This document shows, in pieces, positions 717 to 56,474 of a stretch of DNA of 64,000 nucleotides; position 1 is the stretch's first letter; each line of letters opens with the position of its first letter. The notes beneath the pieces were generated by a model. It worked only from the letters and a program-made list of their open reading frames with translations. It searched no databases and was not told the origin of the DNA. This DNA is from Macrostomum hystrix (lineage: Eukaryota; Animalia; Platyhelminthes): contig CATNEN010000041.1 in the NCBI GenBank assembly GCA_950097015.1, positions 2,976,001 to 3,040,000 on the forward strand, given 5' to 3'. A program made the position numbers and the translations under genes.

Positions 717-3358
717 ATGGAGAACGAGCTATCAGAGCAGAAGCTCCTTCCGGACTCCCAGGCGGCTCCGGCTACCGCGGGCGCCGCCGAAGTCAGCGAA
801 GCTTCTGAGCATCGGGACCGAGTCACGTGCCGGCTGGCGCTCGCCGTGCTGGCCGCGTTCTGGGGCGCAGCGCACTTCGGCTGGAACACCGGGGTCATCA
901 ACAACCCCAAGGCCGGCATCGTCGGCTTCCTCAACCAGTCGGTGGCTGACCGATTCGACAGGCAGCTCAGCGACTACCAGCTCGAGCTGCTCTGGTCCCT
1001 GGTGGTGTCCATCTTTGCCATCGGCGGCATGGCCGGTGCCCTGACTGGCGGCTGCCTTGCTGACAGGTGAGTCCGAATTGAGAGCCTCTGTTGAGTTCCA
1101 GTTGGTATGAGTCCCTACTGAGTCCGGGTTGAGTCCCTACTGAGTCCATGTTGAGTCCCTACTGAGTCCGGGTTGAGTCCCTACTGAGTCCGGGTTGAGT
1201 CCCTACTGAGTCCGGGTTGAGTCCCTACTGAGTCCATGTTGAGTCCCTACTGAGTCCATGTTGAGTCCCTACTGAGTCCGGGTTGAGTCCCTACTGAGTC
1301 CGGGTTGAGTCCCTACTGAGTCCGGGTTGAGTCCCTACTGAGTCCATGTTGAGTCCCTACTGAGTCCACGTTGAGTCACTTCTGAGTCCGGGTTGAGTCC
1401 ACACTGAGTCCATGTTGAGAGCCTCTACTGAGTAAGGATTGAGAGCCCCTACTAGGTTGAGAGCTGAAAGTGCGGGCAGATAGTTCCTACTGTGTCCAGG
1501 CTGTTTTGCAGCTGCTGCTGAGCACAGAAAACGGCCAATCTAAGGGCGAAAAAAATTAAATTTCAGTAAAAAAGACAGTAATTTTCTCATGAGACCATGC
1601 CAGACCTCTATTGTGCTCTGAATGTGCGCTCGGTTGCACACTTAAAGTACATCGGTGCGGGGAGGGACCGGCAAGTTCTCATTTCGAGCGTGCTATTTTT
1701 GGGAGCAGAGGGACGAGTGAAGGAGAGCAGATGAAGCAGCGGGGTGCTGGGGTTGTGAGTCCCCTCACTGAGCCAGAAATGAGTACGGCCGGCCAGCCAG
1801 ATAGCAGCCGCTACTCAGAATGGAGGCCGGTCAAAGTCTGGCCTGGGTTGTGGCGCGAGGCCCGCCACTCGGCCTACGCATGAAGAGATAGGCTGCAGCT
1901 GATTGAGTGTGCCGCTATCAGCCGGGTGTGACAGCACCGTGACTTGCTACAGTTGTGTCTGGCTCACTTGTTGACATTTGGCATACTAAATCTGGCCTGC
2001 AGATGCTCCTATTCGCTACAAAATCAGTTGAAAACTTTTGTTTATTTACTGGCAGAAATCCGCCAGGTTCATCCCACGCCCCCCACACGCTGCTCTGCCG
2101 CCCCCGCAGGCTTGGCCGGTCCCGCGCGATGCTGTGCAACAGCGGCTTCGGCTTCGCCGCCGCGCTGGCCTGCAGCCTCTCCTGCGTGGCCTCCAGCCCG
2201 GAGCTGCTGTTGCTGGGCCGCCTGGCCACCGGCTTCTGCAGCGCAGTGTACACCAGCGTGGTGCCACTGTACATCTCAGAGACGGCGCCTCGGCGTCTCC
2301 GCGGCGGCTTCGGGGTGCTCAACCAGCTGGGCGTGGTGACCGGCCTGCTGCTGTCCCAGGTGGCGAGCACCGACTCACTGCTGGGCGGGCCGAGAATCTG
2401 GCCGCTGCTTTTTGCCCTCTCAGCGGCGCCCTGCCTCCTGCAGCTGGCGCTGCTGCCGTTCTGCCCGGAGACGCCGCGCCACCTGCTGCTCACGCGGCGC
2501 TCCGAGCTGGCAGCCCGCGCCGCGCTGGCGACCCTGCGAGGCCACGACCGCATTGACGCGGAGCTCGCCGAGATCGCCGCCGAGCGAATCGCCGCCAGTT
2601 CATCAGCGGCCTCTCCGACGACCGGCGCGTCAACAACAGCGAAGCTGTGCGCCAAGGCGGAGTTGCGCCGGCCGCTGCTCATCGGGCTGGTGCTGCACCT
2701 GTCCCAGCAGCTGTCTGGCATCAATGTCATCTTCTACTACTCCAGCGACCTCTTCATCGGCGCTGGCGCCAGTCCGCAGGCGTCAAAGTTTGCCACGGTG
2801 GCCGTCGGCTGCGTGATGGTTGCGATGACGGGCGTGACGGTGCCGCTGATGGACCGGGTGGGCCGCCGCTGCCTTCACCTCACGGGCCTGTTGGGAGTCC
2901 TGCTGTGCTCCGTGGGCTTCACCGTCTGCTTCAGCCTGCACAGCCGCCTGGGAGCCGCGGCGCCGACCGGGGCCCTGACCTACGCGAGCATCGGCTTCGC
3001 GCTGCTCATCGTGCTGTTCTTTGCGCTCGGCCCCGGCTCCATCCCGTGGCTGATGCTGTCCGAGATGTTCCAGCAGGAGTCCCGCTCGGCGGCGAACGCC
3101 GTGGGAGTCCTGGTCAACTGGCTGGCCAACTTCAGCGTGGGCCTGATCTTCCCGGTGCTGGTGCAGCACCTGGGCAGCATGCTGTTCGTGCCCTTCTCCG
3201 CCCTGACCGCTGCCTTCCTGCTGTTCCTGTTCTGCTGCATGCCGGAGACCAAGGGTCGCTCCATCGAGGCCATCGCAGCCGGATTTCGCAGCGGCGGCAG
3301 CGGAGCCGGCGGTCTGAGGTGGCGCCCAGCCAAGACCGCTGAATCCGCGCCTGCCTGA
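717..3358 (+). CDS. Facilitated glucose/sugar transporter, class I GLUT (SLC2A family), 2 exons, 532 aa
   Basis: Exons 717-1066 (GACAG|gtgagt) and 2110-3358 (ccgcag|G); the phase-2 junction rebuilds DRLGR. Motifs GWNTGVIN, YISETAP, PETPR, QQLSGINVIFYYS, DRVGRR, GPGSIPW, PETKG. Confidence 0.95.
1090..1450. repeat. 22-bp intronic minisatellite (TTGAGTCCCTACTGAGTCCRKG)
   Basis: Roughly 13-15 tandem units directly downstream of the GLUT 5' splice site. Confidence 0.95.
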
Positions 3359-9593: not shown

Positions 9594-10173
9594 CGCAGCC
9601 TGAGGATAATGAAAGGTCTGAGCACTTCAGCATCCGCAGCCTGAGGATAATGAAAGGTCTGAGCACTTCAGCATCCGCAGCCTGAGGATAATGAAAGGTC
9701 TGAGCACTTCAGCATCCGCAGCCTGAGGATAATGAACGGTCTGAGCACTTCAGCATCCGCAGCCTGAGGATAATGAAAGGTCTGAGCACTTCAGCATCCG
9801 CAGCCTGAGGATAATGAAAGGTCTGAGCACTTCAGCATCGCAGCCTGAGGATAATGAACGGTCTGAGCACTTCAGCATCCGCAGCCTGAGGATAATGAAC
9901 GGTCTGAGCACTTCAGCATCCGCAGCCTGAGGAAAATGAAAGGTCTGAGCACTTCAGCATCCGCAGCCTGAGGATAATGAAAGGTCTGAGCACTTCAGCA
10001 TCCGCAGCCTGAGGGTAATGAAAGGTCTGAGCACTTCAGCATCCGCAGCCTGAGGATAATGAAAGGTCTGAGCACTTCAGCATCCGCAGCCTGAGGACAA
10101 TCAAAGGTCTGAGCACTTCAGCATCCGCAGCCTGAGGACAATCAAAGGTCTGAGCACTTCAGCATCCGCAGCC
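9594..10173. repeat. 41-bp tandem repeat containing the last codons and stop of the Rab-like gene
   Basis: About 14 units of CGCAGCCTGAGGATAATGAAAGGTCTGAGCACTTCAGCATC. The minus strand reads GGC TGC GGA TGC TGA in each unit. Confidence 0.95.
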
Positions 10174-13100
10174 GGGTCTGCTTCCTGAGGATGAGGCGCC
10201 AGTGGCCGAAGTTGAACGGCGCTCGCTGTGCAGCTGGAAGCCCTGGGAGCCTCTGGGCTGCTGCGACATCTGCAGCGTGTTCCGCCTGTACTGCGAGCAG
10301 GCAGCCCCGATACGGTCACTGAGCAGGTCGATGCCCTGGCCTTGTTGGCAACGTTTCAGGGGGGTTAATATGTAAGTGAGTGGAAAAGGTCAATGGGTCA
10401 GTGAGTGGTATGGGTCAGTGAGTGGTATGGGTCAGTGAGTGGTATGGGTCAGTGAGTGGTATGGGTCAGTGAGTGGAAAAGGCCAATGGGTCAGTGAGTG
10501 TTATGGCCGGGTCAGTGAGTGTTATGGGTCAGTGAGTGGTATGGGTCAGTGAGTGGTATGGGTCAGTGAGTGTTATGGGTCAGTGAGTGGAATGGGTCAG
10601 TGAGTGTTATAGGTCAGTGAGTGTTATGGGTCAGTGAGTGGAAAAGGCCAATGGGTCAGTGAGTGTTATGGATCAGTGAGTCGTATGGGTCAGTGAGTGT
10701 TATGGGTCAGTGAGTGGTATGGGTCAGTGAGTGGTATGGGTCAGTGAGTGTTATGGGTCAGTGAGTGGAAAAGGCCAATGGGTCAGTGAGTGTTATGGGT
10801 CAGTGAGTGTTATGGGTCAGTGATTGGTATGGGTCAGTGAGTGGTATGGGTCAGTGAGTGGTATGGGTCAGTGAGTGGTATGGGTCAGTGAGTGGTATGG
10901 GTCAGTGAGTGGTATGGGTCAGTGAGTGGTATGGGTCAGTGAGTGGTATGGGTCAGTGAGTGGTATGGGTCAGTGAGTGTTATGGGTCAGTGAGTGTTAT
11001 GGGTCAGTGAGTGTTATGGGTCAGTGAGTGGTATGGGTCAGTGAGTGGTATGGGTCAGTGAGTGTTATGGGTCAGTGAGTGGAAAAGGCCAATGGGTCAG
11101 TGAGTGTTATGGGTCAGTGAGTGTTATGGGTCAGTGATTGGTATGGGTCAGTGAGTGGTATGGGTCAGTGAGTGGTATGGGTCAGTGAGTGTTATGGGTC
11201 AGTGAGTGTTATGGGTCAGTGAGTGTTATGGGTCAGTGAGTGTTATGGGTCAGTGAGTGGTATGGGTCAGTGAGTGGTATGGGTCAGTGAGTGGAAAAGG
11301 CCAATGGGTCAGTGAGTGTTATGGCCGGGTCAGTGAGTGTTATGGGTCAGTGAGTGGTATGGGTCAGTGAGTGGTATGGGTCAGTGAGTGGTATGGGTCA
11401 GTGAGTGGTATGGGTCAGTGAGTGGTATGGGTCAGTGAGTGGTATGGGTCAGTGAGTGGTATGGGTCAGTGAGTGGTATGGGTCAGTGAGTGGTATGGGT
11501 CAGTGAGTGGTATGGGTCAGTGAGTGTTATGGGTCAGTGAGTGTTATGGGTCAGTGAGTGGTATGGGTCAGTGAGTGGTATGGGTCAGTGAGTGTTATGG
11601 GTCAGTGAGTGTTATGGGTCAGTGAGTGGTATGGGTCAGTGAGTGGTATGGGTCAGTGAGTGTTATGGGTCAGTGAGTGGAAAAGGCCAATGGGTCAGTG
11701 AGTGTTATGGGTCAGTGAGTGTTATGGGTCAGTGATTGGTATGGGTCAGTGAGTGGTATGGGTCAGTGAGTGGTATGGGTCAGTGAGTGTTATGGGTCAG
11801 TGAGTGTTATGGGTCAGTGAGTGTTATGGGTCAGTGAGTGGTATGGGTCAGTGAGTGGTATGGGTCAGTGAGTGGAAAAGGCCAATGGGTCAGTGAGTGT
11901 TATGGCCGGGTCAGTGAGTGTTATGGGTCAGTGAGTGGTATGGGTCAGTGAGTGGTATGGGTCAGTGAGTGGTATGGGTCAGTGAGTGGAATGGGTCAGT
12001 GAGTGTTATAGGTCAGTGAGTGTTATGGGTCAGTGAGTGGAAAAGGCCAATGGGTCAGTGAGTGTTATGGATCAGTGAGTCGTATGGGTCAGTGAGTGTT
12101 ATGGGTCAGTGAGTGGTATGGGTCAGTGAGTGGTATGGGTCAGTGAGTGTTATGGGTCAGTGAGTGGAAAAGGCCAATGGGTCAGTGAGTGTTATGGGTC
12201 AGTGAGTGTTATGGGTCAGTGATTGGTATGGGTCAGTGAGTGGTATGGGTCAGTGAGTGGTATGGGTCAGTGAGTGTTATAGGTCAGTGAGTGTTATGGG
12301 TCAGTGAGTGTTATGGGTCAGTGAGTGTTATGGGTCAGTGAGTGGTATGGGTCAGTGAGTGGTATGGGTCAGTGAGTGGAAAAGGCCAATGGGTCAGTGA
12401 GTGTTATGGCCGGGTCAGTGAGTGTTATGGGTCAGTGAGTGGTATGGGTCAGTGAGTGGTATGGGTCAGTGAGTGTTATGGGTCAGTGAGTGGAATGGGT
12501 CAGTGAGTGGTATGGGTCAGTGAGTGTTATGGGTCAGTGAGTGGAAAAGGCCAATGGGTCAGTGAGTGTTATGGGTCAGTGAGTGGTATGGGTCAGTGAG
12601 TGGTATGGGTCAGTGAGTGGTATGGGTCAGTGAGTGTTATGGGTCAGTGAGTGGAATGGGTCAGTGAGTGTTATGGGTCAGTGAGTGGTATGAGTCAGTG
12701 AGTGGTATTTGTCAGTGAGTCGGAGTTTTAAACCAATGGAGCAGGTAAGTATCTAAGTAGAATCGCAGGTGAAAATTGCTCCTTGGGGCTGTGACTTGAG
12801 TGTTTGCACATGAGTCGATACTTCATACCTCGTGTTGATCCTGAGAGTTCAGTAAGTACGTACACGAGAATGAAAGATTAGAAATAGAAAAGCGCCATCA
12901 GTTGTATTCCCATGCCAACCGGTTTTTGCTGAGGTGACCACACTGAAGCAGCACTCCAGGCGATTCTGGTAGGACTCGATGGAGCTCAATAAAACTCCAT
13001 CTGCGTGTGGCGAGTCACCCTTGTTGAGCACCAGGATCATCTGGGCTAAGGAAGTGCGAATGAGTCGATTGACGATGTTATCAAACTCATGCAACTTAAT

Positions 13101-17632: not shown

Positions 17633-20600
17633 ATGCAGGCAGCTACTGGTCAAAGTGCAGCTTACTCTAGCTATGACTACAGATATGCAAAAGAGTCTAA
17701 CTTTAATTATCGATCTGACACTAAGCAAGGCCAGACACTTCAGGCGGTGCAGACACAGCAGTCCAGTCAGCTCTATTCCCAAGCTGGAAATCAGCAAAGT
17801 GTAACACAATCACTGGCAGCCAGCAGTAGACTGACTGCTCAACAAGCTTCTCAGGCATCAGAATCTAGATTAGAATCTAATGTTACCTCAGACACCAGGT
17901 TTAATGGTGCTTCAGACAACAGGTTCAGTGGTGCTTCAGACACCAGGTTCAATGGTGCCTCGGACACCAGGTTCAATGGTGCCTCAGACACCAGGTTCAA
18001 TGGTGCTTCGGACACCAGGTTCAATGGTGCCTCGGACACCCGGTTCAATGGTGCTTCAGACAACAGGTTCAGTGGTGCTTCAGACACCAGATACAATGGT
18101 CCTTCAGACAACAGGTTCAGTGGTCCTTCAGACAACAGGTTCAGTGGTGCTTCAGACACCAGGTTCAATGGTGCCTCGGAGGAAGTTAATCAAAGTCGGA
18201 TTAATCAATCCTCAGATGGGGATTTCTTTGCCACTTATGGAACGAAAAAAGAGCGCCGAACTGTGCAAAAAGACTCAAATTTAGATGAAAGCAAGAAGAA
18301 AAATGATAACGCAGCCAGCCAGCAAAGCCGGAGGCAGGACGACAGCCAAGTAGCTGCTGTCATGAGTCTCGCTGACTCAAAGGAAGCAAGTCGTGATCTA
18401 GAGTCTCGAGGCTTAGATAAGAAGCGGGAAGATCACTATGCTCGAGCTAAGAGCAACGAGGAGCGCATTGTGCAAGCAAGGCAGGCAAAAAGCAAGAAAG
18501 AACTTGCGGTCTCTAATCGTAAAAATATAGACAGCAGAAAGAAACAAGCCAGGCAGTCTGAGCTTGGGCAAAATAAAAGAAAGGACCCTCCGCCGCCGCC
18601 GTCATTACCACCACCGTTGCCGCCTAAGACATCGCCGTTTAGGAAGCAGAATGAAGCTCGACTCAACGCCATTGAGCGCAGGTTACCTGAGCTTCAGATT
18701 GCACTGCGCATGCTGCAGCAAGAGAAGTCGAATAACGCCGAATCTCAGACTTCAGTGCCTTTTATATCTGCGCCAGTTGAAGCTTCTAAGAGGCTCCCGG
18801 TTGCTGCAACTTCTACTGTCAACTACAAAACACAGTCGACTGCCACCGATCCAAAACCAACGGTTCTGTGCAGCAACGCACATGTCGGGACTGAAGAAAA
18901 ATTAACTCAGCATCGAAATCAGTCGACCGAAACGTCAGATTTTCGTTTGGGTGTTTTGGATTCTGTTGCGGCTTCAAACGAGCCTAGCGAAAGTAAACTT
19001 AAAGACGCTAAGTCAAGAACTGAGGTTCTGTCAGAGAATAGCTATGCTGCACGTCCATCGAGCCCAAGTTACAGCCCGGACATTTCTGACGAAGAAGTCG
19101 CCTCTAAAACGAAGCCTAATTTAGCACCTGTGTCCAAAGTCAAATCGACTGAACATTCGTCTTTTCACAAGCCACAGGCCAGTCCGGAATCGACAGAAGA
19201 GTCGGAGGTGGAGGACGAAGTAAAACCAAACTACCAGAAAACCGTTCATGCACTAGCTAGTGCACGCTTTAAGCCGGAAAACTCCAAATCAAACGATTCA
19301 GAATCTGAAATTGACGAGAGCGTTTCTTATAAGTCTCACAGTGATCTGGAAGCACCGCCAATTCAGAGCTATCCATTTGATTCCGAGGATTCGTCACCTG
19401 AAATCATCGAGGATCTGAGGCCCCATAAGCGCAAAGACGTTGAAGCTATTAATAGTGGAGAATTACATTCTGACTCTGAAGAATCTTTGCCAGAAATCTA
19501 CGAAGATTTGGCGCCACAAATGGGCACGAATGTCCAAGCACCTAACATTCTCCATGAATCAGCTGATTCGGAAAAATATAATTCAGAAATAGGTAAAGGT
19601 GTAACGCCTAACGCCCATCAAAATGTAGAAGCTCCTGATTCTCATAGGAATTCTACCGTCTCGATGGTGCCAGATGATTCTGACGTTAATGAAGGGTTGG
19701 CGCCTAGCACTCAGAAAACTGTCGAGACACCTTGCGCTAAACGAGTAGATTCATGCTTGGCTATTATTGTTAGTCGTCGTGACTTTTCGCAACACGTTTT
19801 CTCAGACCGCGATACAGTTTTAGAGGAGTTCATTACTCCTGATTATGTGCCAAACGTTTTACAACCAAATAGACGGCCAGAAAAGTCTGAAAAGTTCCCA
19901 CCAAGCGAAGTCAATCTTCCTGCCTTGCTGGACGACCCATTGATCACAGAAAATGTTAGGAAAGAGCACGAAAGACCTATCAACGAGACAATCGAAAAGT
20001 CAACTTGCCGGGTTGTAGAGCTCGAGCCAAGTTTTCGTTGGATGTTTGGTGACAAGTGCGAGCAGACAGATTCTATCTTCAGACCGCTGGTAGACTCCAA
20101 ATTCAGCACTAAGTCAGAAGATGCACTAAAGGGCATCGACGCATGCACGGACGCGCAAGGTGATCTTCTTTCGAGTTCTCTAAGCGCTAGCGGTGCTTCT
20201 ACTATGAGCACAGTGACCAACACTGATACAACGGGTATTATTAGCAAGACAAACTCGCTTGCAAACAAGTTGGCTTTCTCGTCAAGCCAACGAGAAAGTA
20301 ATTTAACTACTGAAATCCTTGAGTATTCGGAGAAGCAGCAGTACTTGAGCGAGATTTCGCGGCTTAAAACGATTGTAAGCGAGTTAGAAAAGCGGGTCTT
20401 TGTGATGGAGACCGTCCGGATCCAAGAATCTCAGACAGCTTCGTATTCGGCTGTTAATCGTAGAACTGTGGGCCTCATGGTAAAGCCACTATGCAGAGAT
20501 GTCGCTATCAATATTTTTATTGAAGACGCCAAGCCGACGCAGCGATCGGTTGGTGTGAATGTTTCCTTTAGGGAAGACAGCAACCAGTCTCAAGCTGCTG

Positions 20601-21529
20601 CTTGTACGATGCGCGCGCCTGAGCTTCTGGGGAATAGAGAAATAGAATCTGGCGGCCTGCAAAGAACAGATAGCTCATCAAGCTCCGCTGCTTCTTTGGT
20701 TTCAATTCAAAGAGTAAACTATTTCCATAGTCTGCGTCAAACTTACGGTATCACTGCAGCTGAGATGATTAACATCATAACGGAATTGCTGAAAAGAGAT
20801 GTGAAAAGTGTTGGACTCCAAGTTTGCATGGATTCTTTGCCGGGTTTTCATGGCAATAATTCATTTAAAACGGAATCTGACGACCTTATTAAAATGCCAA
20901 CCACTTCTGATGGTCTAAGTCTCCACAGAACCTTCGATTCCACAAACTCAGTTGTACTGCATTCTCGCCATCTTGGAGAGAAATGGGATGATGCATCGCA
21001 AAGTACATCGGATTCTTGCGTTGAACCTACTCTTTCTACATATCAAGCCAGTCAGAGCCCTGAAAGTTCGACAGAATCTACCATAGACTTTTCTTACGCC
21101 AGTGCTCGCTCAGATTCCGGTATGCAATGCCAGGAAGAGAGTTCCAACCAGGACTTTCAATACACTAGCGGTGATGGCACTGTCACAACCAGCCGCACGG
21201 TATTCTCCAGCAGGCGAATTGTTCAACAGGGTCTACCTGAGTCTTCTGCTACAGCTTCTGTCGCGATGCACACCGCTACCTTTCAGCAGGAAGTTTCGAA
21301 CAGCAGTGACCAATCAACAGCTGAGCTGGCCTACAGCTGGCATGCAAACCCAATGGATGTCAGGTTAGATTTATTATATTGTTTCTGGTGTCATTTTGAC
21401 CCTCCCAAAATTTCTTGGATAAAGCTCTTTTTTTTCTTTATGCAATGACCCTACAGACCAGATAGAAGAATACTCGATTTCGGCAGCAGCAACTCTGAGA
21501 GTGGGGCGCTACAGTCGATGAGCTCATTT
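17633..21529 (+). CDS. Large low-complexity Ser/Glu/Thr-rich protein (giant exon of about 3.7 kb plus at least one more exon)
   Basis: Stop-free frame from 17633 to the donor GTC AG|gttaga at 21363. Next exon 21457-21529 (ctacag|...TTT|gtgagt) continues in frame. Contains a polyproline stretch, a short coiled coil and SVG-type motifs. Candidate later exons at 22235-22342 and 22543-22603 could not be linked in phase. Confidence 0.75.
17885..18180 (+). repeat. 24-bp coding repeat (SD[T/N]RF[N/S]G[A/P]), about 12 copies
   Basis: TCAGACACCAGGTTCAATGGTGCY units, in frame. Confidence 0.93.
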
Positions 21530-24941: not shown

Positions 24942-27900
24942 ATGTCCTCGCAGGTGCCGGTCAGCCGGATCCTTCTTGTCAGCGGCGACTCCGTCTGGCT
25001 CGGCGCCGCCCTCAATGGCCTGAAGAAGGCCGGCGTCCGGCTGGACAATCCGTACGGCATGGTGTTCGCATCGGCATGCTCTTTCCAGGAAGCCCTCGAC
25101 TGCGTGTCCTCCGATGGCGACGTCCAGATTGTTGTCATCGACAGGTACGCGACAGGCAACTGGTCTTCATGGGCGCTCCATGATCCCTGTGCTCTTCCCC
25201 AGCTCTGATCCCAGTGTTCTTCCCCAGCTCTGATCCCAGTCCTCTTCCCCAACTCTGATCCCAGTGCTCTTCCCCAGCTCTGATCCCATTGTTCTTCCCC
25301 AGCTCTGATCCCAGTCCTCTTCCCCAACTCTGATCCCAGTCCTCTTCCCCAACTCTGATCCCTGTGCTCTTCCCCAGCTCTGATCCCAGTGTTCTTCCCC
25401 AGCTCTGATCCCAGTCCTCTTCCCCAACTCTGATCCCAGTGCTCTTCCCCAGCTCTGATCCCAGTGTTCTTCCCCAGCTCTGATCCCAGTCCTCTTCCCC
25501 AACTCTGATCCCAGTCCTCTTCCCCAACTCTGATCCCAGTCCTCTTCCCCAACTCTGATCCCAGTGCTCTTCCCCAGCTCTGATACCAGCGTTCTTTCCC
25601 AGCTCTGATCCCAGTCCTCTTCCCCAACTCTGATCCCAGTGCTCTTCCCCAGCTCTGATCCCAGTCCTCTTCCCCAACTCTGATCCCAGTGCTCTTCCCC
25701 AACTCTGATCCCAGTGCTCTTCCCCAGCTCTGATCCCAGTCCTCTTCCCCAACTCTGATCCCAGTGCTCTTCCCCAACTCTGATCCCAGTGCTCTTCTCC
25801 AGCTCTGATCCCAGTGTTCTACTCCAGCTCTGATACCAGCGTTCTTTCCCAGCTCTGATCTCAGTGCTATTCCCCAGCTCTGATCCCAGTGTTCTACTCC
25901 AGCTCTGATCCCAGTGTTCTACTCCAGCTCTGATCCCAGTGTTCTACTCCAGCTCTGATCCCAGTGTTCTACTCCAGCTCTGATCCCAGTGTTCTACTCC
26001 AGCTCTGATCCCAGTGTTCTACTCCAGCTCTGATCCCAGTGTTCTACTCCAGCTCTGATCCCAGTGTTCTACTCCAGCTCTGATCCCAGTGTTCTACTCC
26101 AGCTCTGATCCCAGTGTTCTACTCCAGCTCTGATCCCAGTGTTCTACTCCAGCTCTGATCCCAGTGTTCTACTCCAGCTCTGATCCCAGTGTTCTACTCC
26201 AGCTCTGATCCCAGTGTTCTACTCCAGCTCTGATCCCAGTGTTCTACTCCAGCTCTGATCCCAGTGTTCTACTCCAGCTCTGATCCCAGTGTTCTACTCC
26301 AGCTCTGATCCCAGTGTTCTACTCCAGCTCTGATCCCAGTGTTCTACTCCAGCTCTGATCCGAGTGTTCTACTCCAGCTCTGATCCCAGTGTTCTACTCC
26401 AGCTCTGATCCGAGTGTTCTACTCCAGCTCTGATCCCAGTGTTCTACTCCAGCTCTGATCCCAGTGCTAAGTACCTCCTCATTTCCCATCTGATCTGGTT
26501 TTCCACTTGATCTCTTAATATTCTCACCTGACCTCACCTCTTTGTCCACACCTGACCTCCTCATCTTCACACCTGACCTCCTCATCTTCACACCTGACCT
26601 CCTCATCTTCACACCTGACCTCCTTATCTTTACACCTGACCTCCTCATCTTCACACCTGACCTCCTCATCTTCACACCTGACCTCTTCATCTTCGCACCT
26701 GACCTCCTCATCTTCACACCTGACCTCCTCATCTTCACTCCTGATTTCCTCATCTTCCTCATCTGCATACTTGCCCTCCGCCTCAGGCACCTGACCTCCT
26801 CGGAGGTGAGCCAGGCGGCTATCACGCTGGCCAACCGGCTGAACGAGCGCCGGCCGGAGCTGTCCCTCTACGTGGTGCTGAGCGGCGGCGATGACGAGCG
26901 GGCGCTGCTGGAGGAGCTGGTGAGCCACGCGGTGGACGGCTACTTTAACCGAGACGAGTCGGACTACAGCGGCTGGTTCCGAATTCTGTCCGCCGAGCTG
27001 GCCGAGAAGTCGGCCACGCCCTTTTACGACGCCCTGAAGAGCTACGTGAAGATGGCCAAGGACTCGTGGCACACGCCAGGCCACTCTGGCGGCGACTCGC
27101 TGCGCAACTCGCCCTGGGTCGGCGACTTCTACGACTTTGTCGGCGAGCACATGCTGCGGGCCGACCTGTCCGTGTCCGTGCCCATGCTGGACTCGCTCAT
27201 GCACCCCAAGGGAGTCATTGCCGCCGCGCAGTCGCTGGCCGCCAAGGCTTTCGGGGCCCGCAAAACCTACTTTGCCACCAACGGTGCCTCCACCACCAAC
27301 AAAGTGATCTTCCAGACACTGCTGGCCCCCGGAGACAAGCTGCTGCTCGACCGCAACTGCCACAAGTCTGTCCACTACGGCGTCATCCTGTCAGACGCCC
27401 GGCCCGTCTACATCGACTGCTCTGCCAGGCCGCAGTTCGGCACCTTTGGCCCCGTGCCGAAGCGAGCCATCTACGAGGCCATCGAGGCCAACCCGGATGC
27501 CAAGGCGCTTATCCTCACCAACTGCACCTACGACGGCCTGCTGTACGACCTCAAGCCGATCATTGAGGCTGCGCACAAGTGAGACCTGTAGCATTGCAAT
27601 GTTGAGACATCTCTAGGCAGATTTCACACCACATATTTCCCCCGCGGGATCAAATTGTGGCAAGCGATAACCAGTGACCCCCGCTACTCCTTTCGCCCGT
27701 CAGAGCCGGCATCAAGGTGATCATAGACGAGGCCTGGTACGCCTTCGCCCGCTTCCACCCGGCCTTCCGGCCCACCGCCCTAGAGGCGGGCGCCGACTAC
27801 GTCACGCAGAGCAGCCACAAGACCCTGACCGCCTTCTCCCAGGCCAGCATGGTGCATGTTAACGACCCCGCCTTTGATGAGCATCTGTTTCGCGAGAACT

Positions 27901-29604
27901 TCAACATGTACGCCAGCACCAGCCCACAGTACGGCCTCATTGCCAGCCTAGACGTGGGCAGGAAGCAGGTGAGTGCGCGCCGCTGCGACATAGAAAATTA
28001 GCCACAATCCTCTCAGATCTCCAGGTTGGGCCACCATCCTCCCAGATCCCCAGGTTGAGCCGCCATCCTCCCAGATCCCCAGATTGAGCCGCCATCCTCC
28101 CAGATCCCAGGTTGGGCCACCATCCTCCCAGATCCCCAGGTTGGGCCACCATCCTCCCAGATCCCCAGATTGAGCCGCCATCCTCCCAGATCCCAGGTTG
28201 GGCCACCATCCTCCCAGATCCCAGGTTGGGCCATCATCCTCCCAGATCCCCAGATTGGGCCACCATCCTCCCAGATCTCCAGATTGAGCCGCCATCCTCC
28301 CAGATCCCAGGTTGGGCCACCATCCTCCCAGATCCCAGGTTGGGCCACCATCCTCCCAGATCCCAGGTTGGGCCACCATCTTAGATCAGTGCAGTGCAAG
28401 TGTAATCGAGAATTCACGTGACCCCTCCGCCCGCAGGCAGTGATGGAGGGCTACCGACTACTGGACCGCACTCTGAAGCTGTCGGGCGAGCTGCGCCAGA
28501 AAATCAACTCCACCGGGGTGTTTCGCGTGTTAGAGCTAGAGGACCTGCTACCGGAGGAAGTGCAGCAGGACGGCGTCAGGCTGGACCCCACCAAGCTGAC
28601 TGTGGACATTTCCAAGTCCGGCTACAGCGCACAGGAGCTGCAGCAGATCCTGTTCGAGCGGTTCAACATCCAAGGCGAGAAACGTACCTTCAACACCATC
28701 ACCCTGCTGCTCAGCATGGGCACCACTAGCAGCAAGGTGAGCTGCGGAAGTATAAATAACTGTGCCTCAGAGTAGGCGCCCGTTGAAGACTGGGGTATTT
28801 AGGGAGTTAAGAGAAGCGATAAATAATCCCTATCTCACGGACTGTCCCAGACTCCAGTCAGGAATTCCCATATCCTGCACATGTCCCAGTCAGGAATCCC
28901 CATTTCCCGCACCTGTCTCAGGTGTTGCTCAGGATTCCTTATTTCCCGCACCTGTCTCAGGTGTTGCTCAGGATTCCCCATTTCCCGCACCTGTCTCAGG
29001 TGTTGCTCAGGATTCCCCATTTCCCGCACCTGTCTCAGGTGTTGCTCAGGATTCCCCATTTCCCGCACCTGTCTCAGGTGTTGCTCAGGATTCCCCATTT
29101 CCCGCACCTGTCTCAGGTGTTGCTCAGGATTCCCCATTTCCCGCACCTGTCTCAGGTGTTGCTCAGGAATCCCTATATCCCGCACCGTCGCAGGTGTCCC
29201 GCCTATTCGACGCCATGCTCCGTCTGGCCAAGGACCGCCGGCCGCCGCGCAGCTACTTCCGCATCACGGAAATCCCTCGCTTCAGCCGCCTAGCCTGCCT
29301 GCCACGCCATGCCTTCTATGAGAGCGGCGAGCGGCTCCTTCTGCTGGACGACGACGGCCGGCCCAACGAGGCGCTGCTGGGCCGCGTCTGCTGCGACCAG
29401 ATTCTCTCCTACCCGCCCGGCATCCCCATCGTGGTGCCCGGTCAGGTCATCAACCTGGCCATCGTCACCTACCTGGCGCGCCTCACCAAGGGCCCCAAGG
29501 CATTGGAGATTCACGGCCTGGCCGACTGCGACGGCGAGTACGGAGTGCGGGTGCTCACCCAGCACGAGTTCGAGAACATCCCATCCCGCGGTCTGTTTGA
29601 GTAG
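24942..29604 (+). CDS. Bacterial-type PLP-dependent Lys/Arg/Orn decarboxylase (fold type I) with N-terminal receiver-like wing domain, 5 exons, 656 aa
   Basis: Exons 24942-25144, 26787-27578, 27704-27968, 28437-28736 and 29194-29604 total 1971 nt; all introns are GT-AG and phase-consistent. Motifs WHTPGHSGG, ATNGASTTNK, LLDRNCHKS, TNCTYDG, DEAW, TQSSHKT (PLP lysine), STSPQYGLIASLD, DPTKLT, YPPGIP. Confidence 0.95.
25190..26465. repeat. 25-bp minisatellite in decarboxylase intron 1
   Basis: About 50 units. CCCAGCTCTGATCCCAGTGCTCTTC grades into a homogeneous CCAGCTCTGATCCCAGTGTTCTACT block. Confidence 0.96.
26525..26762. repeat. 21-bp minisatellite just upstream of decarboxylase exon 2
   Basis: About 10 units of ACACCTGACCTCCTCATCTTC. 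Confidence 0.93.
28005..28380. repeat. 28-29-bp minisatellite in decarboxylase intron 3
   Basis: About 13 units of CCATCCTCCCAGATCCC(C)AGGTTGGGCCA. Confidence 0.93.
28850..29193. repeat. 39-bp minisatellite in decarboxylase intron 4
   Basis: About 8 units of TTTCCCGCACCTGTCTCAGGTGTTGCTCAGGATTCCCCA. Confidence 0.93.
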
Positions 29605-29757
29605 TGACTGCCTGGAGCATTTTGCATGGCGTTTTTTTGCTAACAGGGCCTGAATCGCTTGCTCTTAGCCTCAACGAGCTGCTGTGCTGTGTCTAACCGA
29701 TCCTAGATAAGTCTCACCTGCTGAAATGCTGTTACTTGCGTAGGCATGCATGCTGAA

Positions 29758-32572: not shown

Positions 32573-34189
32573 ATGACAGCGGGCTGTCTGCGTCAGTTTG
32601 CCAGCGGCACGAGCCTGCGCGGCTTCAGCCGCCTGGTGCGGCCCGACCAGCACCCCTTCCTGCGGCTTCTGTGGGCTGCCTTCGTGCTCAGCATGCTCTG
32701 CCTGCTAGGCGTCAACGCTTGCTACCTGGTCAGCGAGTACTTCGAGTACCACGTTAGCCTGCAGACCGACCAGCTGGCCAACGCGGCCTCCGGGTTCCCA
32801 AGCATCACTGTGTGCTCCCACCAACCCTTCTCGCCTCGCGCCGCCCAGCTCTGGGCCAGCGGCCGGATCCTCAGCCCCGCTGACTTCTCCCGCCGAGTGC
32901 GCACCGCCGTCAGCAGTTTGACGGCCAGCGGCCGCACCCTTGACGCCGCCGACATGTTCCAGAACGACCGAGTGTTCACCTACTTCCAGAACCTGTCGCC
33001 GGCGCAGGCCCGCCAACTCGGCCATCGCTTCGACGACCTGCTGCTTTTGTGCGTGATGCGCCACAGCCGCAACACCAATCCCTCCGTGGCGCATGAGGAG
33101 GAGTGCCGCTTCCGCGTGCGCCGCATTCTGCATCCGCTCTACTTCAGCCGCTACAAGCTGCAGGTCAGCGAGGACCCGGCCTACGTCAGCAGCGTCTCCA
33201 TGGTGATAACCGCTGGTGGCTTCAACGCCAGCGCCGCGGATGACTCGGGTCCTAAGCAGGCCTACAACCTGTTCCACGAAGCGGTCGGCCTGGCCATTGT
33301 GCTGCACGAGCCCGGAACCTACCCCAACATTGACTTCGAGCAGTTCACCGTGCTGCCCGGCACGGCAAGCACCATCCGCTACCGGCCAGAGCGCTACATC
33401 AAGTTCTGCAGTCCCAAGACTGACTGCATGTACGCCAGCGAGCTGCCGGCCGCGCCGCGCATCAGCCAGGACGGCGAGACATTGTTCAACTACACCTACG
33501 AAGCCTGCATCGCCCAGAGCATCAGCCGCTTCATCGCGCACCACTGCAACTGCACATCCGCCTTCCACCTGAGCCCGCGCCCTCACGACCCGCTACTGCT
33601 GCCCTACTGCATCCGCCTGGATCTTGCCGGCCCCGACAGTCTGCTGGCCAGGACCGCCTGCGCCAGGAATATCAGCCTGGACCGCGTCTACTCCGAGCAG
33701 CGCTCCGGCAGCGGCGCCACCAGCGAGGCCGGCGGCGGTGGCATCGAGCAGCCGTGCCACAGGTGTTGCCTGCACTGGCGCTACTCAGTGGAGCAGTCCA
33801 ACTGCGGCTGGCGTCTTGGCGCCACCCAGATGGCGCAGCTCAGACTCCGGCAGCCCGGGGCCAAACAGGATGAGCAAGTCGCCCCCGGGGATCTGGCACT
33901 AGTAACGGTTGCCAGGGCGACCTACATGACGCTGGAGCACAGCGAGAAGCCCGTGATCACGCTTAGCGCCTTGCTGAGCCGCCTCGGCGGGGTCGGAAGT
34001 CTCACCCTGGGCGTCACCCTCACCGTGGACTTCGAGCTGGTGGAGCTGGCCTTCCTGCAGCTGCTGCGGAGGCTGCCGGCTGCCCTCCTCCGCGGTACTA
34101 GCGCCGCCGCCGCCAATGACGACTCGCTGCCGCTGAGACAGCCGGCGTCTGCTGCGGACGGAGAAGCCAGGGGCAACTACTGCGCTTGA
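32573..34189 (+). CDS. DEG/ENaC (amiloride-sensitive sodium channel family) subunit, intronless, 538 aa
   Basis: N-terminal F..GTSLRG, TM1 (LLWAAFVLSMLCLLGV), post-TM1 FPSITVCSHQPF, Cys-rich thumb (YTYEACIAQ...CNC...PYC) and a TM2-like LLSRLGGVGSLTLGVTLTVDFELVE. Confidence 0.9.
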   Translation: MTAGCLRQFASGTSLRGFSRLVRPDQHPFLRLLWAAFVLSMLCLLGVNACYLVSEYFEYHVSLQTDQLANAASGFPSITVCSHQPFSPRAAQLWASGRILSPADFSRRVRTAVSSLTASGRTLDAADMFQNDRVFTYFQNLSPAQARQLGHRFDDLLLLCVMRHSRNTNPSVAHEEECRFRVRRILHPLYFSRYKLQVSEDPAYVSSVSMVITAGGFNASAADDSGPKQAYNLFHEAVGLAIVLHEPGTYPNIDFEQFTVLPGTASTIRYRPERYIKFCSPKTDCMYASELPAAPRISQDGETLFNYTYEACIAQSISRFIAHHCNCTSAFHLSPRPHDPLLLPYCIRLDLAGPDSLLARTACARNISLDRVYSEQRSGSGATSEAGGGGIEQPCHRCCLHWRYSVEQSNCGWRLGATQMAQLRLRQPGAKQDEQVAPGDLALVTVARATYMTLEHSEKPVITLSALLSRLGGVGSLTLGVTLTVDFELVELAFLQLLRRLPAALLRGTSAAAANDDSLPLRQPASAADGEARGNYCA

Positions 34190-43681: not shown

Positions 43682-44214
43682 TCTCATCCCGTGGCAATCG
43701 GCAGCTTCAGGGAGGCCAGCCCAGACAAAGCTTGTTTCCTAGAATAATTTTAGCCCGCTAATTTTGAGTTAGACTCAATTGCTGAGCCAATCAGGAACGG
43801 CCTTTAAAAGAATCGAAGCTTTGCTAATTTTCTTAACCTAAAGTATTTATTCAAATACAAAAAATAGAACATATTAGATCCACAATCTGTGCTGAAATGA
43901 AAAATGAAATTAGTTATTGTTTTTTTACGAATTTAGCGGCTTGATATATTTAGCGGACAGTGCCTCCACAGATTTTGCACTGCATTTTATTTCTCAAAGT
44001 GTGCAATAAACTTATCTTTATTGTTTAATGAATTTTGTGACAGCAGAAACACAAGCCAGCAACAAATTTCAGATTTATTTGTCAAATCGAATCTACAACA
44101 ATCCAATGATCTCACAACCTTGCTCAGTGCCTTCTCCGGGCACTGCAACACAGGCAGTGCGGAGCTCTCAGACCAGTTGAGCAGATTCCACAAAGGAGTT
44201 TCAGGAATTCGACT

Positions 44215-47200
44215 GGAGAGTTAAGGGGATTTGACTGGGGAGTTGAGAGGATTTAACTGGGGAGTTAAGGAATTCGACTGGGGAGTTGAGAGGGTTTAAC
44301 TGGGGAGTTAAGGAATTCGACTGGGGAGTTGAGAGGATTTAACTGGGGAGTTGAGAGGATTTAACTGGGGAGTTGAGAGGATTTAACTGGGGAGTTGAGA
44401 GGATTTAACTGGGGAGTTGAGGGGTTTTAACTGGGGAGTTGAGAGGATTTAACTGGGGAGTTGAGAGGATTTAACTGGGGAGTTAAGGAATTCGACTGGG
44501 GAGTTGAGAGGATTTAACTGGGGAGTTAAGGGATTCGACTGGGGAGTTGAGAGGATTTAACTGGGGAGTTGAGGGGTTTTAACTGGGGAGTTGAGGGCAT
44601 TTAACTGGGGAGTTGAGGGCATTTAACTGGGGAGTTAAGGGATTCGACTGGGGAGTTGAGGGCATTTAACTGGGGAGTTGAGGGCATTTAACTGGGGAGT
44701 TGAGGGCATTTAACTGGGGAGTTGAGGGCATTTAACTGGGGAGTTGAGGGCATTTAACTGGGGAGTTGAGGGCATTTAACTGGGGAGTTCAGGGCATTTA
44801 ACTGGGGAGTTGAGGAGTTTTAACTGGGGAGTTGAGGGCATTTAACTGGGGAGTTGAGAGCATTTAACTGGGGAGTTGAGGGCATTTAACTGGGGAGTTG
44901 AGGGCATTTAACTGGGGAGTTGAGAGCATTTAAATGGGGAGTTGAGGGCATTTAACTGGGGAGTTGAGGGCATTTAACTGGGGAGTTAAGGGATTCGACT
45001 GGGGAGTTGAGGGCATTTAACTGGGGAGTTGAGGGCATTTAACTGGGGAGTTGAGGGCATTTAACTGGGGAGTTGAGAGCATTTAAATGGGGAGTTGAGG
45101 GCATTTAACTGGGGAGTTGAGGGCATTTAACTGGGGAGTTAAGGGATTCGACTGGGGAGTTGAGGGCATTTAACTGGGGAGTTGAGGGCATTTAACTGGG
45201 GAGTTGAGGGCATTTAACTGGGGAGTTCAGGGCATTTAACTGGGGAGTTGAGGAGTTTTAACTGGGGAGTTGAGGGCATTTAACTGGGGAGTTGAGAGCA
45301 TTTAACTGGGGAGTTGAGGGCATTTAACTGGGGAGTTGAGGGCATTTAACTGGGGAGTTGAGGGCATTTAAATGGGGAGTTGAGGGCATTTAAATGGGGA
45401 GTTGAGGGCATTTAACTGGGGAGTTGAGGGCATTTAACTGGGGAGTTCAGGGCATTTAACTGGGGAGTTGAGGAGTTTTAACTGGGGAGTTGAGGGCATT
45501 TAACTGGGGAGTTGAGGGCATTTAACTGGGGAGTTGAGGGCATTTAACTGGGGAGTTGAGTGCATTTAACTGGGGAGTTGAGGGCATTTAACTGGGGAGT
45601 TGAGGGCATTTAACTGGGGAGTTGAGGGCATTTAACTGGGGAGTTGAGGGCATTTAACTGGGGAGTTGAGGGCATTTAAATGGGGAGTTGAGGGCATTTA
45701 AATGGGGAGTTGAGGGCATTTAACTGGGGAGTTCAGGGCATTTAACTGGGGAGTTGAGGAGTTTTAACTGGGGAGTTGAGGGCATTTAACTGGGGAGTTG
45801 AGGGCATTTAACTGGGGAGTTGAGGGCATTTAACTGGGGAGTTGAGGGCATTTAACTGGGGAGTTGAGGGCATTTAACTGGGGAGTTGAGGGCATTTAAC
45901 TGGGGAGTTGAGGGCATTTAAATGGGGAGTTGAGGGCATTTAAATGGGGAGTTGAGGGCATTTAACTGGGGAGTTCAGGGCATTTAACTGGGGAGTTGAG
46001 GAGTTTTAACTGGGGAGTTGAGGGCATTTAACTGGGGAGTTGAGGGCATTTAACTGGGGAGTTGAGGGCATTTAACTGGGGAGTTGAGGGCATTTAACTG
46101 GGGAGTTGAGGGCATTTAACTGGGGAGTTGAGGGCATTTAAATGGGGAGTTGAGGGCATTTAAATGGGGAGTTGAGGGCATTTAACTGGGGAGTTGAGGG
46201 CATTTAACTGGGGAGTTCAGGGCATTTAACTGGGGAGTTGAGGAGTTTTAACTGGGGAGTTGAGGGCATTTAACTGGGGAGTTGAGGGCATTTAACTGGG
46301 GAGTTGAGGGCATTTAACTGGGGAGTTGAGGGCATTTAACTGGGGAGTTGAGGGCATTTAACTGGGGAGTTGAGAGCATTTAACTGGGGAGTTGAGGGCA
46401 TTTAACTGGGGAGTTGAGGGCATTTAACTGGGGAGTTGAGAGCATTTAACTGGGGAGTTGAGGGCATTTAAATGGGGAGTTGAGGGCATTTAACTGGGGA
46501 GTTGAGGGCATTTAACTGGGGAGTTCAGGGCATTTAACTGGGGAGTTGAGGAGTTTTAACTGGGGAGTTGAGGGCATTTAACTGGGGAGTTGAGAGCATT
46601 TAACTGGGGAGTTGAGGGCATTTAACTGGGGAGTTGAGGGCATTTAAATGGGGAGTTGAGGGCATTTAAATGGGGAGTTGAGGGCATTTAACTGGGGAGT
46701 TGAGGGCATTTAACTGGGGAGTTGAGGGCATTTAACTGGGGAGTTGAGGGCATTTAAATGGGGAGTTGAGGGCATTTAACTGGGGAGTTGAGGGCATTTA
46801 ACTGGGGAGTTGAGGGCATTTAACTGGGGAGTTGAGGGCATTTAACTGGGTAGTTGAGGGCATTTAACTGGGGAGTTGAGGGCATTTAACTGGGGAGTTG
46901 AGGGCATTTAACTGGGGAGTTGAGGGCATTTAACTGGGGAGTTGAGGGCATTTAAATGGGGAGTTGAGGGCATTTAACTGGGGAGTTGAGGGCATTTAAC
47001 TGGGGAGTTGAGGGCATTTAACTGGGGAGTTGAGGGCATTTAACTGGGGAGTTGAGGGCATTTAAATGGGGAGTTGAGGGCATTTAACTGGGGAGTTGAG
47101 GGCATTTAAATGGGGAGTTGAGGGCATTTAACTGGGTAGTTGAGGGCATTTAACTGGGGAGTTGAGGGCATTTAACTGGGGAGTTGAGGGCATTTAAATG

Positions 47201-47570
47201 GGGAGTTGAGGGCATTTAAATGGGGAGTTGAGGGCATTTAACTGGGGAGTTGAGGGCATTTAACTGGGGAGTTAAGGGATTCGACTGGGGAGTTAAAGAA
47301 TTCGACAGGGGAGTTGAGGGGATTTACCTGGGGAGTTAAGGGATCTCACTGGGGAGTTGAGGATCTCACTGGGGAGTTGAGGATCTCACTGGGGAGTTGA
47401 GGATCTCACTGGGGAGTTGAGGATCTGATAGGGGAGTTGTGGATCTCACTGGGGAGTTGAGGATCTGATTGTGGAGTTGAGGATCTCACTGGGGAGTTGA
47501 GGATCTGATTGGGGAGTTGATCTCACTGGGGAGTTGAGGGGATTTACCTGGGGAGTTGAGGATCTCAGTG
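44215..47570. repeat. 22-bp G-rich satellite, about 3.3 kb, between the WSC paralogs
   Basis: About 150 units of CTGGGGAGTTGAGGGCATTTAA, with divergent variants at both ends. Confidence 0.97.
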
Positions 47571-48176
47571 GGATTGGATTCGTTAGATTAAGTAATTTAG
47601 TAATTTGGAATTTGCGGCAGGAGTTGACGCAGGAATCTGCAGGGCAGACAAAGCTTCAAAGTGTAGCTGGCCATTTTGCTTCACGGAACGATGACCTGCA
47701 TTTACACTTGTTTTCCTATCTCTCATCTTCTCCCTGATGTTTTTGTAGCCGAGGTGCGGAGTGGCCGCATTCTGATGAAAGGCCTGTGACACCGACCTGA
47801 CTGCCAGGCCAGCTAATGCTAGTGTGTAATCAGTGATATGAAACATGTAGGCGTTGGCAGAGTCTGCTCAGCCTGGCACTCGCATTTTGTGCTGAGCAGA
47901 CATGGCTGGCCTTTCTAACACCACCCCTTTGGCTACAACTGAGAGATAAAATACAGTTTTAACCTGCTCAGGCATTTGAATAATTAGCTGATTGTTGAAA
48001 TATGTTGGTTATTATCAGTCCAAAAGCAACACTCGAGCTGGCATGGCAACCAACCGACTATCTGCCGAGCTTAGTCTTTAAAAATAATCACAGGCACGCC
48101 AGTGTTGACCGACATCTTTCTAGCCGGACCTCGATCTACTCACATTAGTTTGCTCGCGCTCAGCAACTCAGCTGGC

Positions 48177-56330: not shown

Positions 56331-56474
56331 CTAAGAACTGAAGTCACCGAGCAATTTGGTTTTTTTCGCGACCAATTTGGTTTATTTCACGAACGTCAAA
56401 CTTTAAACGAGTTAACCGTGGAACACAAAAGCCGTAATGTGACATGTTCTTGATCCTCATGACAAGTGTTCAAT

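Follow-up and report, generated by a model that had tools for sequence, protein, structure and literature searches.

Introduction

Basic-amino-acid decarboxylases of the aspartate aminotransferase (AAT) fold that carry an N-terminal wing have been reported as restricted to bacteria and a small number of archaea (PMC6257575). Relatives in eukaryotes comprise wingless forms in Viridiplantae and Paulinella (PMC8503589) and a long form, of the type of Mycobacterium tuberculosis Rv2531c, in Apicomplexa (PMC13506015); animals are unmentioned in these two accounts of the eukaryotic members. Here we analyze a gene of this family at positions 24942 to 29604 of a 64,000-nucleotide stretch of the genome of the flatworm Macrostomum hystrix (contig CATNEN010000041.1, positions 2,976,001 to 3,040,000), which we call the window. 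An earlier note, made from the letters of the window, had described the gene as an intron-containing LdcI/AdiA/SpeF-type decarboxylase and a candidate domesticated horizontal transfer, and had called the family essentially prokaryotic. That last statement holds for the nearest kin of the gene, which are bacterial, and fails for the subfamilies of plants, Paulinella, and Apicomplexa. We found no prior literature report of this decarboxylase gene, or of its transfer, in Macrostomum. The reading that we favor, and hold as a whole with good confidence, is that of a transferred, spliced, duplicated, and conserved decarboxylase, most likely one that would convert lysine to cadaverine.

Results

A transcribed and spliced gene of five exons

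We re-derived the gene model as five exons on the plus strand (Table 1), which join into 1971 nt, i.e., the single 656-codon frame of the earlier note plus a TAG stop codon. No internal stop codons were found in the joined frame, and all four introns begin with GT and end with AG. The spliced model is colinear with 652-amino-acid bacterial proteins from residue 5 or 6 to residue 655 and is gap free at the exon joins, which makes a set of chance open reading frames (ORFs) unlikely. Exon 1 aligns to residues 2 to 65 of the bacterial relatives; although Pfam does not recognize it, its colinearity from residue 5 onward identifies it as part of the gene. The signatures listed in the earlier note (HKS, DEAW, SSHK, STSP, and YPPG) were all located in the model, with NCHKS at residue 258, DEAW at 340, SSHK at 368, STSP at 403, and YPPG at 593.

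Splicing was assessed with two public runs, X6 and X7, in which each sampled word of exon 2 was found in only ~45 million letters. Reads of both runs were aligned to positions 26500 to 29650 of the window, yielding contigs of 1415 and 1601 nt that omit exactly introns 2, 3, and 4. The joints of introns 3 and 4 were recorded as 27964>28433 and 28734>29192, which are equivalent to 27968>28437 and 28736>29194; their 4- and 2-base ambiguities resolve to GT..AG at the model boundaries. For intron 1, the support is a loose contig end at 26784 in X6/X7, rather than a listed joint; its sequence, ...GTCATCGA, is that of the end of exon 1. This loose end is offset by three bases because exon 1 and intron 1 both end in CAG. 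One contig (X7 contig 12) has 305 nt upstream of the 26784 joint, leaving room for exon 1 and a leader of ~100 nt, and another (X7 contig 13) shows that the 3' untranslated region extends beyond 29650. Each of the transcript contigs differs from the window exons at one position (28685 and 29532), and both differences are synonymous. Run X11, possibly the source sample of the assembly, contains all of the sampled words across exon 2, intron 2, and exon 3, while transcript-like runs hold 73% of these words, roughly the exonic share. The junction evidence proposed as a check in the earlier note is thus direct for introns 2 to 4 and comes from the loose end for intron 1. The gene is nuclear, belongs to a Macrostomum flatworm, and is transcribed and spliced.

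Table 1. Parts of the decarboxylase gene and other features of the window
Feature	Coordinates	Strand	Remarks
Exon 1	24942..25144	+	ATG at 24942; residues 1-67 plus 2 nt; start of N-terminal wing-like domain; GT donor at 25145
Intron 1	25145..26786	+	1642 nt, GT..AG; 25-mer x 51 at 25181-26466 and 21-mer x 10 at 26547-26757; almost all minisatellite
Exon 2	26787..27578	+	Residues 68-331; remaining wing and linker, first half of the pyridoxal phosphate (PLP) domain, HTPGH and DLSVSV pocket residues, NCHKS
Intron 2	27579..27703	+	125 nt, GT..AG, repeat-free; joint 27578>27704 in X6 and X7 contigs
Exon 3	27704..27968	+	Residues 332-419; DEAW, SSHK PLP-lysine, STSP
Intron 3	27969..28436	+	468 nt, GT..AG; 29-mer x 13 minisatellite at 28001-28380; joint in X6, X7, and X2
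Exon 4	28437..28736	+	Residues 420-519; end of OKR_DC_1 major domain; E equivalent to LdcI E526
Intron 4	28737..29193	+	457 nt, GT..AG; 39-mer x 8 minisatellite at 28890-29197
Exon 5, coding part	29194..29604	+	Residues 520-656, TAG at 29602-29604; OKR_DC_1_C domain with YPPGIP
MFS sugar transporter	1955-3358		Window neighbor
DEG/ENaC (ASC) channel	32573-34189	+	Single intron-less 538-aa ORF, complete, GC3 0.86; ~3 kb downstream of the decarboxylase
Ty3-type pol ORF	52333-57536	-	Intact-looking, 1262 aa: protease, reverse transcriptase, RNase H, integrase; adjoins Tc1-like DDE_3 transposase ORF (353 aa)

The product belongs to the Orn/Lys/Arg decarboxylase family

Exons 2, 3, and 4 fall on consecutive parts of the Pfam profile OKR_DC_1 (PF01276; cutoff, 27 bits), with scores of 212 bits (profile positions 1 to 195), 78.9 bits (201 to 293), and 22.9 bits (349 to 416), respectively. 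Exon 5 scored 28.6 bits against OKR_DC_1_C (PF03711; cutoff, 24.2 bits), so that two of the three profiles named for checking in the earlier note were reached above their cutoffs. A second flatworm protein, P0291, matches OKR_DC_1 with 338.8 bits over positions 1 to 417. The Pfam scan reported no match to PF03709, the N-terminal CheY/REC-like wing, for the exons, for P0291, or for the bacterial protein P0292, even at E<=1; a precomputed PF03709 match is present in a few bacterial relatives. About 163 residues precede the equivalent of T149 in the model, as against 148 in LdcI, and this region is colinear with the bacterial relatives; the alignment of P0292 with AdiA starts at residue 40. The model aligns with Escherichia coli LdcI at H245, D330, W333, S364, H366, K367, T398, and S400, and all PLP contacts are kept. 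Judged by its profile matches and PLP motifs, the product is a fold-type I (AAT-fold) PLP-dependent decarboxylase of the Orn/Lys/Arg decarboxylase family, the LdcI/AdiA/SpeF-type assignment that the earlier note had made.

The NCBIfam equivalogs for LdcI, LdcC, AdiA, and SpeC/F were missed widely: the bacterial relative P0002 scored 195 to 252 bits against cutoffs of 794 to 1310, and the window exons also fell far below. The clade belongs to none of the LdcI, LdcC, AdiA, SpeC, and SpeF equivalogs, and since no cutoff was approached, these models give no substrate assignment.

The nearest relatives are betaproteobacterial

An exhaustive profile search with exon 2 returned thousands of homologues, among which the best full-length one was P0002, a protein of a Burkholderiales metagenome-assembled genome (MAG) on a plainly bacterial contig. 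As a query, P0002 recovered its Burkholderiales relatives alone, while the Macrostomum lignano model P0008 recovered closer kin. These closest kin are enzymes of freshwater Betaproteobacteria that resemble Chromobacteriaceae. The bacterial proteins P0292/P0293 are 77.5% identical to the model. Proteins of Chromobacterium, Aquitalea, Pseudogulbenkiania, Vogesella, and Gulbenkiania follow at 71 to 74%, then those of Sphaerotilaceae at about 68% and the Burkholderiales MAG clade of P0002 at about 59%. The bacterial P0292 gives the same ranking of identities across the bacterial groups as the flatworm model does. In DNA sequence, the closest bacterial gene matches the model at 76.6% of positions overall and at 58% of third codon positions, which indicates that the transfer was not recent. 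The frameshifted, Aquitalea-like gene P0523 (80.6% over 391 amino acids) was considered as a closer donor and rejected, being no closer than P0292 over the same range.

The bacterial genes sit in a conserved neighborhood. Those of P0292/P0293 are flanked by a gene for a DinG-like helicase on one side and by argF-argG on the other, in the vicinity of DnaB and flagellin genes, and in four betaproteobacterial loci (L001, L006, L007, and L091) the decarboxylase gene is directly upstream of argF-argG or argD-argF. Among the best matches in a collection of 5.8 billion proteins, no named nonbacterial protein other than those of M. lignano was found, a result that is limited to the contents of the collections searched and does not extend to other Macrostomum species. 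The nearest Atlas clusters are all bacterial, and the exon 2 search for short transcript-derived flatworm proteins returned none besides P0290.

Several further samples share 3 to 12% of the 31-mers of exons 2 and 3, namely the wastewater metatranscriptomes X3 to X5, the freshwater metagenome X15, and runs X16 to X18. Bacterial DNA of 77% identity should share virtually no 31-mers, so the source of the shared words would be either related flatworms or a bacterial relative that is much closer.

A probable single acquisition and duplication

The second M. lignano copy, P0291 (UniProt A0A1I8HZQ0), is 77% identical to the window protein; the contig encoding it was not found in our search. We built a quick tree of 91 rows and a careful tree of 49 rows (LG+C20), both with three Macrostomum rows and with very long outgroups (branch lengths, 2 to 4). 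The Macrostomum rows form one clade in both, with support of 99* in the quick tree and 100/99* in the careful tree. Both flatworm paralogues also share three derived residues at sites that are invariant in bacteria (G271D, R320L, and H401Y). The clade support and the shared residues together point to one acquisition followed by duplication, a conclusion that we regard as supported by the sequences. The direction of transfer is indicated by the distribution of homologues (hundreds of Betaproteobacteria, in which synteny is conserved, but one animal genus) and by the identity gradient of 77 > 68 > 59%. From these comparisons, a bacterial gene was probably taken up by an ancestor of the flatworm.

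We propose that a Macrostomum ancestor took up a betaproteobacterial gene once; that the gene would later have acquired four spliceosomal introns, of which three have since filled with minisatellites; and that it was subsequently duplicated, with both copies kept under the protein-level constraint seen in bacteria. If its origin is bacterial, the gene must have gained its introns later than the transfer. That three of the four introns are mostly minisatellite is an observation that may bear on the origin or growth of introns in the Macrostomum genome.

Both copies appear to be constrained as enzymes

As a conservation reference, we used 193 columns that are invariant across 83 bacterial relatives. 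Of these, 185 are retained in the window protein and 182 in the paralogue; when each bacterium was omitted in turn, it retained at least 98%. Differences between the two paralogues follow the bacterial column classes, affecting 5% of invariant, 13% of highly conserved, 28% of moderately conserved, and 56% of poorly conserved columns (Fisher's P = 6e-14 for invariant columns versus the rest). Differences between the paralogues arose inside the animal lineage, so this gradient reflects purifying selection on a working fold and not decay. On this pattern of substitutions, both flatworm copies are under purifying selection.

The substrate pocket resembles that of lysine decarboxylases

Cryo-electron microscopy of Hafnia alvei LdcI with a lysine analogue located the epsilon-ammonium pocket at T149, S181, S183, and E526 (PMC12091041). 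We aligned E. coli LdcI, AdiA, SpeC, and SpeF (from MG1655) with the flatworm-bacterial clade, a comparison by sequence alignment only. At the four positions, the window protein and nine bacterial relatives have T/S/S/E, as do LdcI and LdcA, and the flatworm paralogue has S/S/S/E. The corresponding residues are A/G/E/T in AdiA, C/C/A/E in SpeC and SpeF, and A/S/T/N in Rv2531c. In searches of the PDB, P0292 scored 290 bits against Rv2531c (9N0O), 275 against LdcA (6Q6I), and 156 against an ornithine decarboxylase; exon 2 scored 155 bits against Rv2531c. The Rv2531c and LdcA scores are well above those of LdcI, LdcC, and AdiA, with the ornithine decarboxylases lower still, and LdcA is the best-scoring structure among characterized basic-amino-acid decarboxylases.

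Rv2531c is a glutamate decarboxylase for which R576 has been suggested as the residue that binds the gamma-carboxylate (PMC13506015). The equivalent residue in P0292 is Ser, as in lysine decarboxylases, and the window protein shares the ...AFSQAS motif. We set aside a glutamate decarboxylase of the Rv2531c type on the pocket residues, on this Ser, and on the absence of an extra N-terminal domain from the 656-amino-acid protein. Because the four aligned side-chain pocket residues match those of LdcI and LdcA, the flatworm enzyme is predicted most likely to convert L-lysine to cadaverine and CO2. The earlier note had proposed a new route to putrescine, cadaverine, or agmatine; the pocket residues narrow the predicted range to cadaverine. 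PLP would be bound via the SSHK lysine, residue 371, and the protein is probably cytosolic, since an N-terminal extension is absent. The same pocket suggests that the betaproteobacterial clade, which is labeled arginine/ornithine decarboxylase, may be misannotated.

Database entries and neighborhood of the gene

The model and the partial M. lignano protein P0290 (UniProt A0A1I8HG80) share 97% identity. P0008 (UniRef A0A1I8FFN8, also from M. lignano) represents the same or a near-identical gene, with many frameshifts, and is named "Protein kinase domain-containing protein." This name is an annotation error that stems from an error-rich early assembly. The decarboxylase proteins are present in UniProt solely as automatic entries.

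Other features of the window are listed in Table 1; the window also encodes a kinase fragment. In addition, a 1271-amino-acid ORF without a Pfam match (17633-21448, plus strand) lies in a low-GC stretch (GC, 0.35 to 0.47; G+C content at third codon positions [GC3], 0.43), in contrast to neighboring host genes, which are rich in GC3. At positions 10001-12000 and 44001-48000, the GC skew is very strong (+0.53 to +0.60 in 2-kb bins), and these stretches are probably strand-biased satellite arrays.

Discussion

Alternative explanations

The transfer proposed in the earlier note is supported by betaproteobacterial nearest kin, by eukaryotic matches to Macrostomum alone, by splicing, and by the animal context, but the origin and the function of the gene must each be weighed against observations that count against our reading. 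The sister relationship between Macrostomum and P0292/P0293 is weak, with an SH-like approximate likelihood-ratio test value of 88 in the quick tree and support of 65/62 in the careful tree, and constraining the ingroup bacteria to a single clade costs only 0.45 log-likelihood units and gives a tree that is not rejected (approximately unbiased [AU] test, P = 0.28). Nesting inside the bacteria is favored by the identity gradient but, given this AU result, not formally demonstrated, so that the phylogenetic check suggested in the earlier note returned a Macrostomum clade beside its bacterial kin without firm support for the sister grouping. Moreover, occurrence outside M. lignano-like samples is hinted at by the shared 31-mers alone. 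The AU result leaves room for a Macrostomum lineage outside all sampled bacteria of the subfamily, as would be expected for an ancient eukaryotic or animal gene that was inherited vertically and lost nearly everywhere else, and OKR_DC_1 proteins do exist in other eukaryotes (PMC13506015, PMC8503589). However, an identity of 77% to one betaproteobacterial family is far higher than would be left after a divergence as old as the root of cellular life, and the bacterial groups differ in their distance from the flatworm gene, whose identity to them falls from 77% to 68% to 59% in the same order as that of P0292. No other eukaryote appears among the best matches in the 5.8-billion-protein collection, and the eukaryotic subfamilies of the literature are wingless or long forms, unlike the flatworm protein; we therefore consider vertical inheritance very improbable. 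Still less weight, close to none, falls on bacterial DNA misjoined to flatworm DNA by contamination or chimeric assembly. The high identity to Betaproteobacteria would fit such a misjoin, as would the GC3 of 0.87, which is also typical of donors. The earlier note had counted host-like GC3 against contamination, yet host genes and donors overlap (window neighbors, 0.86 to 0.89; bacterial homologues, 0.71 to 0.93; the closest, L006/L007, 0.93), so this measure is uninformative. Spliceosomal introns are absent from bacteria, and the four GT..AG introns, removed exactly in transcript-derived contigs, bear minisatellites typical of the Macrostomum genome. The divergence from the nearest bacterial gene, both overall and at third positions, and the presence in X11 of every sampled word across exon 2, intron 2, and exon 3 argue in the same direction. 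The animal neighbors cited in the earlier note stand as well: the DEG/ENaC gene is ~3 kb away, and the window holds the MFS gene and retroelements.

With regard to function, the His at position 401, conserved in LdcI, AdiA, SpeC/F, and all 83 bacterial relatives, is Tyr in both flatworm paralogues. This change, beside the STSP phosphate-binding loop, is among eight alterations of bacterial-invariant residues that also include the first proline of VPYPPG, and these could be expected of a gene that was transferred and transcribed but has no enzyme function, whether as a decaying relic or through noncatalytic co-option. Such a loss of function is nonetheless unlikely, since both paralogues have an intact frame despite differences at 23% of residues, every PLP-contact motif is retained, substitutions after the duplication avoided conserved columns (5% versus 56%), and both transcript variants are synonymous. 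The choice of substrate is less secure. We found no characterized enzyme in the ~650-amino-acid betaproteobacterial clade, the NCBIfam cutoffs for LdcI, LdcC, AdiA, and SpeC/F were missed by far, and databases name the bacterial relatives arginine or ornithine decarboxylases, next to whose genes lie arginine biosynthesis genes (argF/argG or argD/argF). In addition, Rv2531c, the best-scoring structure, proved to be a glutamate decarboxylase, so annotation in the superfamily is unreliable and activities may be hidden (PMC13506015). An active enzyme with ornithine, arginine, glutamate, or another amino acid as its substrate is consequently a serious possibility, although we would not call it probable. 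Against it, the pocket equals that of LdcI and LdcA and differs from those of AdiA, SpeC/F, and Rv2531c at two to four of the four positions, and Ser replaces R576. Pseudomonas aeruginosa LdcA belongs to the ArgR regulon and yet is a lysine decarboxylase (PMC6257575), and hence the argF/argG neighborhood is compatible with the lysine prediction. Lysine thus stays, on its pocket, the most likely substrate of a transferred and conserved flatworm enzyme.

Implications

Well-supported, expressed, and selectively kept bacterial genes in animals are still few. Our data support the view that this gene is a further case of a known phenomenon, in which a bacterial metabolic gene is acquired, intronized, duplicated, and conserved in an animal; it adds an AAT-fold decarboxylase class, putatively of the wing type, to the enzymes that animals have acquired. 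If this history is correct, the four introns are datable intron gains, none of them older than the transfer. It is conceivable, and we put it forward tentatively, that two conserved lysine decarboxylase paralogues constitute a dedicated cadaverine pathway in an animal, free of antizyme control; we know of no such pathway in animals. If so, cadaverine may have a function particular to the lineage, such as adhesion and release, defense, pH handling, or polyamine supply linked to regeneration. As RNA interference, transgenesis, and in situ methods are available in the laboratory model M. lignano, the function is accessible to direct tests. The analysis also flags a large betaproteobacterial clade whose members are named arginine/ornithine decarboxylase while their pocket is lysine-like.

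Comparison with known systems

The closest systems are the ~652-amino-acid betaproteobacterial OKR_DC_1 decarboxylases of Chromobacterium, Aquitalea, Vogesella, Pseudogulbenkiania, and P0292/P0293, which have the same length, domain order, T/S/S/E pocket, and PLP contacts. The flatworm gene differs from them in its four spliceosomal introns, in its animal neighbors in place of argF/argG, and in the changes at eight invariant positions. Among characterized enzymes, P. aeruginosa LdcA (PDB 6Q6I) shares the T, S, S, E pocket and the HTPGH, DLSVSV, and NCHKS motifs with the flatworm and bacterial clade. At 751 amino acids, LdcA is ~100 residues longer, and its C-terminal half aligns in pieces; the likeness comes from scores and motifs and not from a subfamily phylogeny. 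LdcI (CadA) of E. coli and H. alvei has in common with the flatworm protein the AAT fold, the S-x-H-K lysine, H245, D330, W333, the T/S-T-S-P loop, and the pocket. It is nevertheless distant: P0002 scores 219 against the LdcI model (cutoff, 1056) and 252 against the LdcC model (cutoff, 968), the flatworm gene has no cadB antiporter context, and His396 of LdcI is Tyr in the flatworm. Rv2531c of M. tuberculosis (PDB 9N0O), a "cloaked" glutamate decarboxylase, gives the highest PDB score but has 947 amino acids with an extra N-terminal domain, the pocket A/S/T/N, and R576 where the flatworm has Ser. The flatworm protein, at 656 amino acids, starts level with the 652-amino-acid bacterial proteins, unlike Rv2531c.

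Animal ornithine decarboxylase is likewise PLP dependent, acts on a basic amino acid, and feeds polyamine metabolism, but its fold (alanine racemase, fold-type III) and its ancestry are unrelated, and the AAT-fold protein is not known to be linked to antizyme. An antizyme mRNA is present in M. lignano (PMC1874602), which suggests that the fold-type III ornithine decarboxylase is regulated there in the usual way. The flatworm AAT-fold decarboxylase would be expected to escape the antizyme control that governs the animal fold-type III ornithine decarboxylase.

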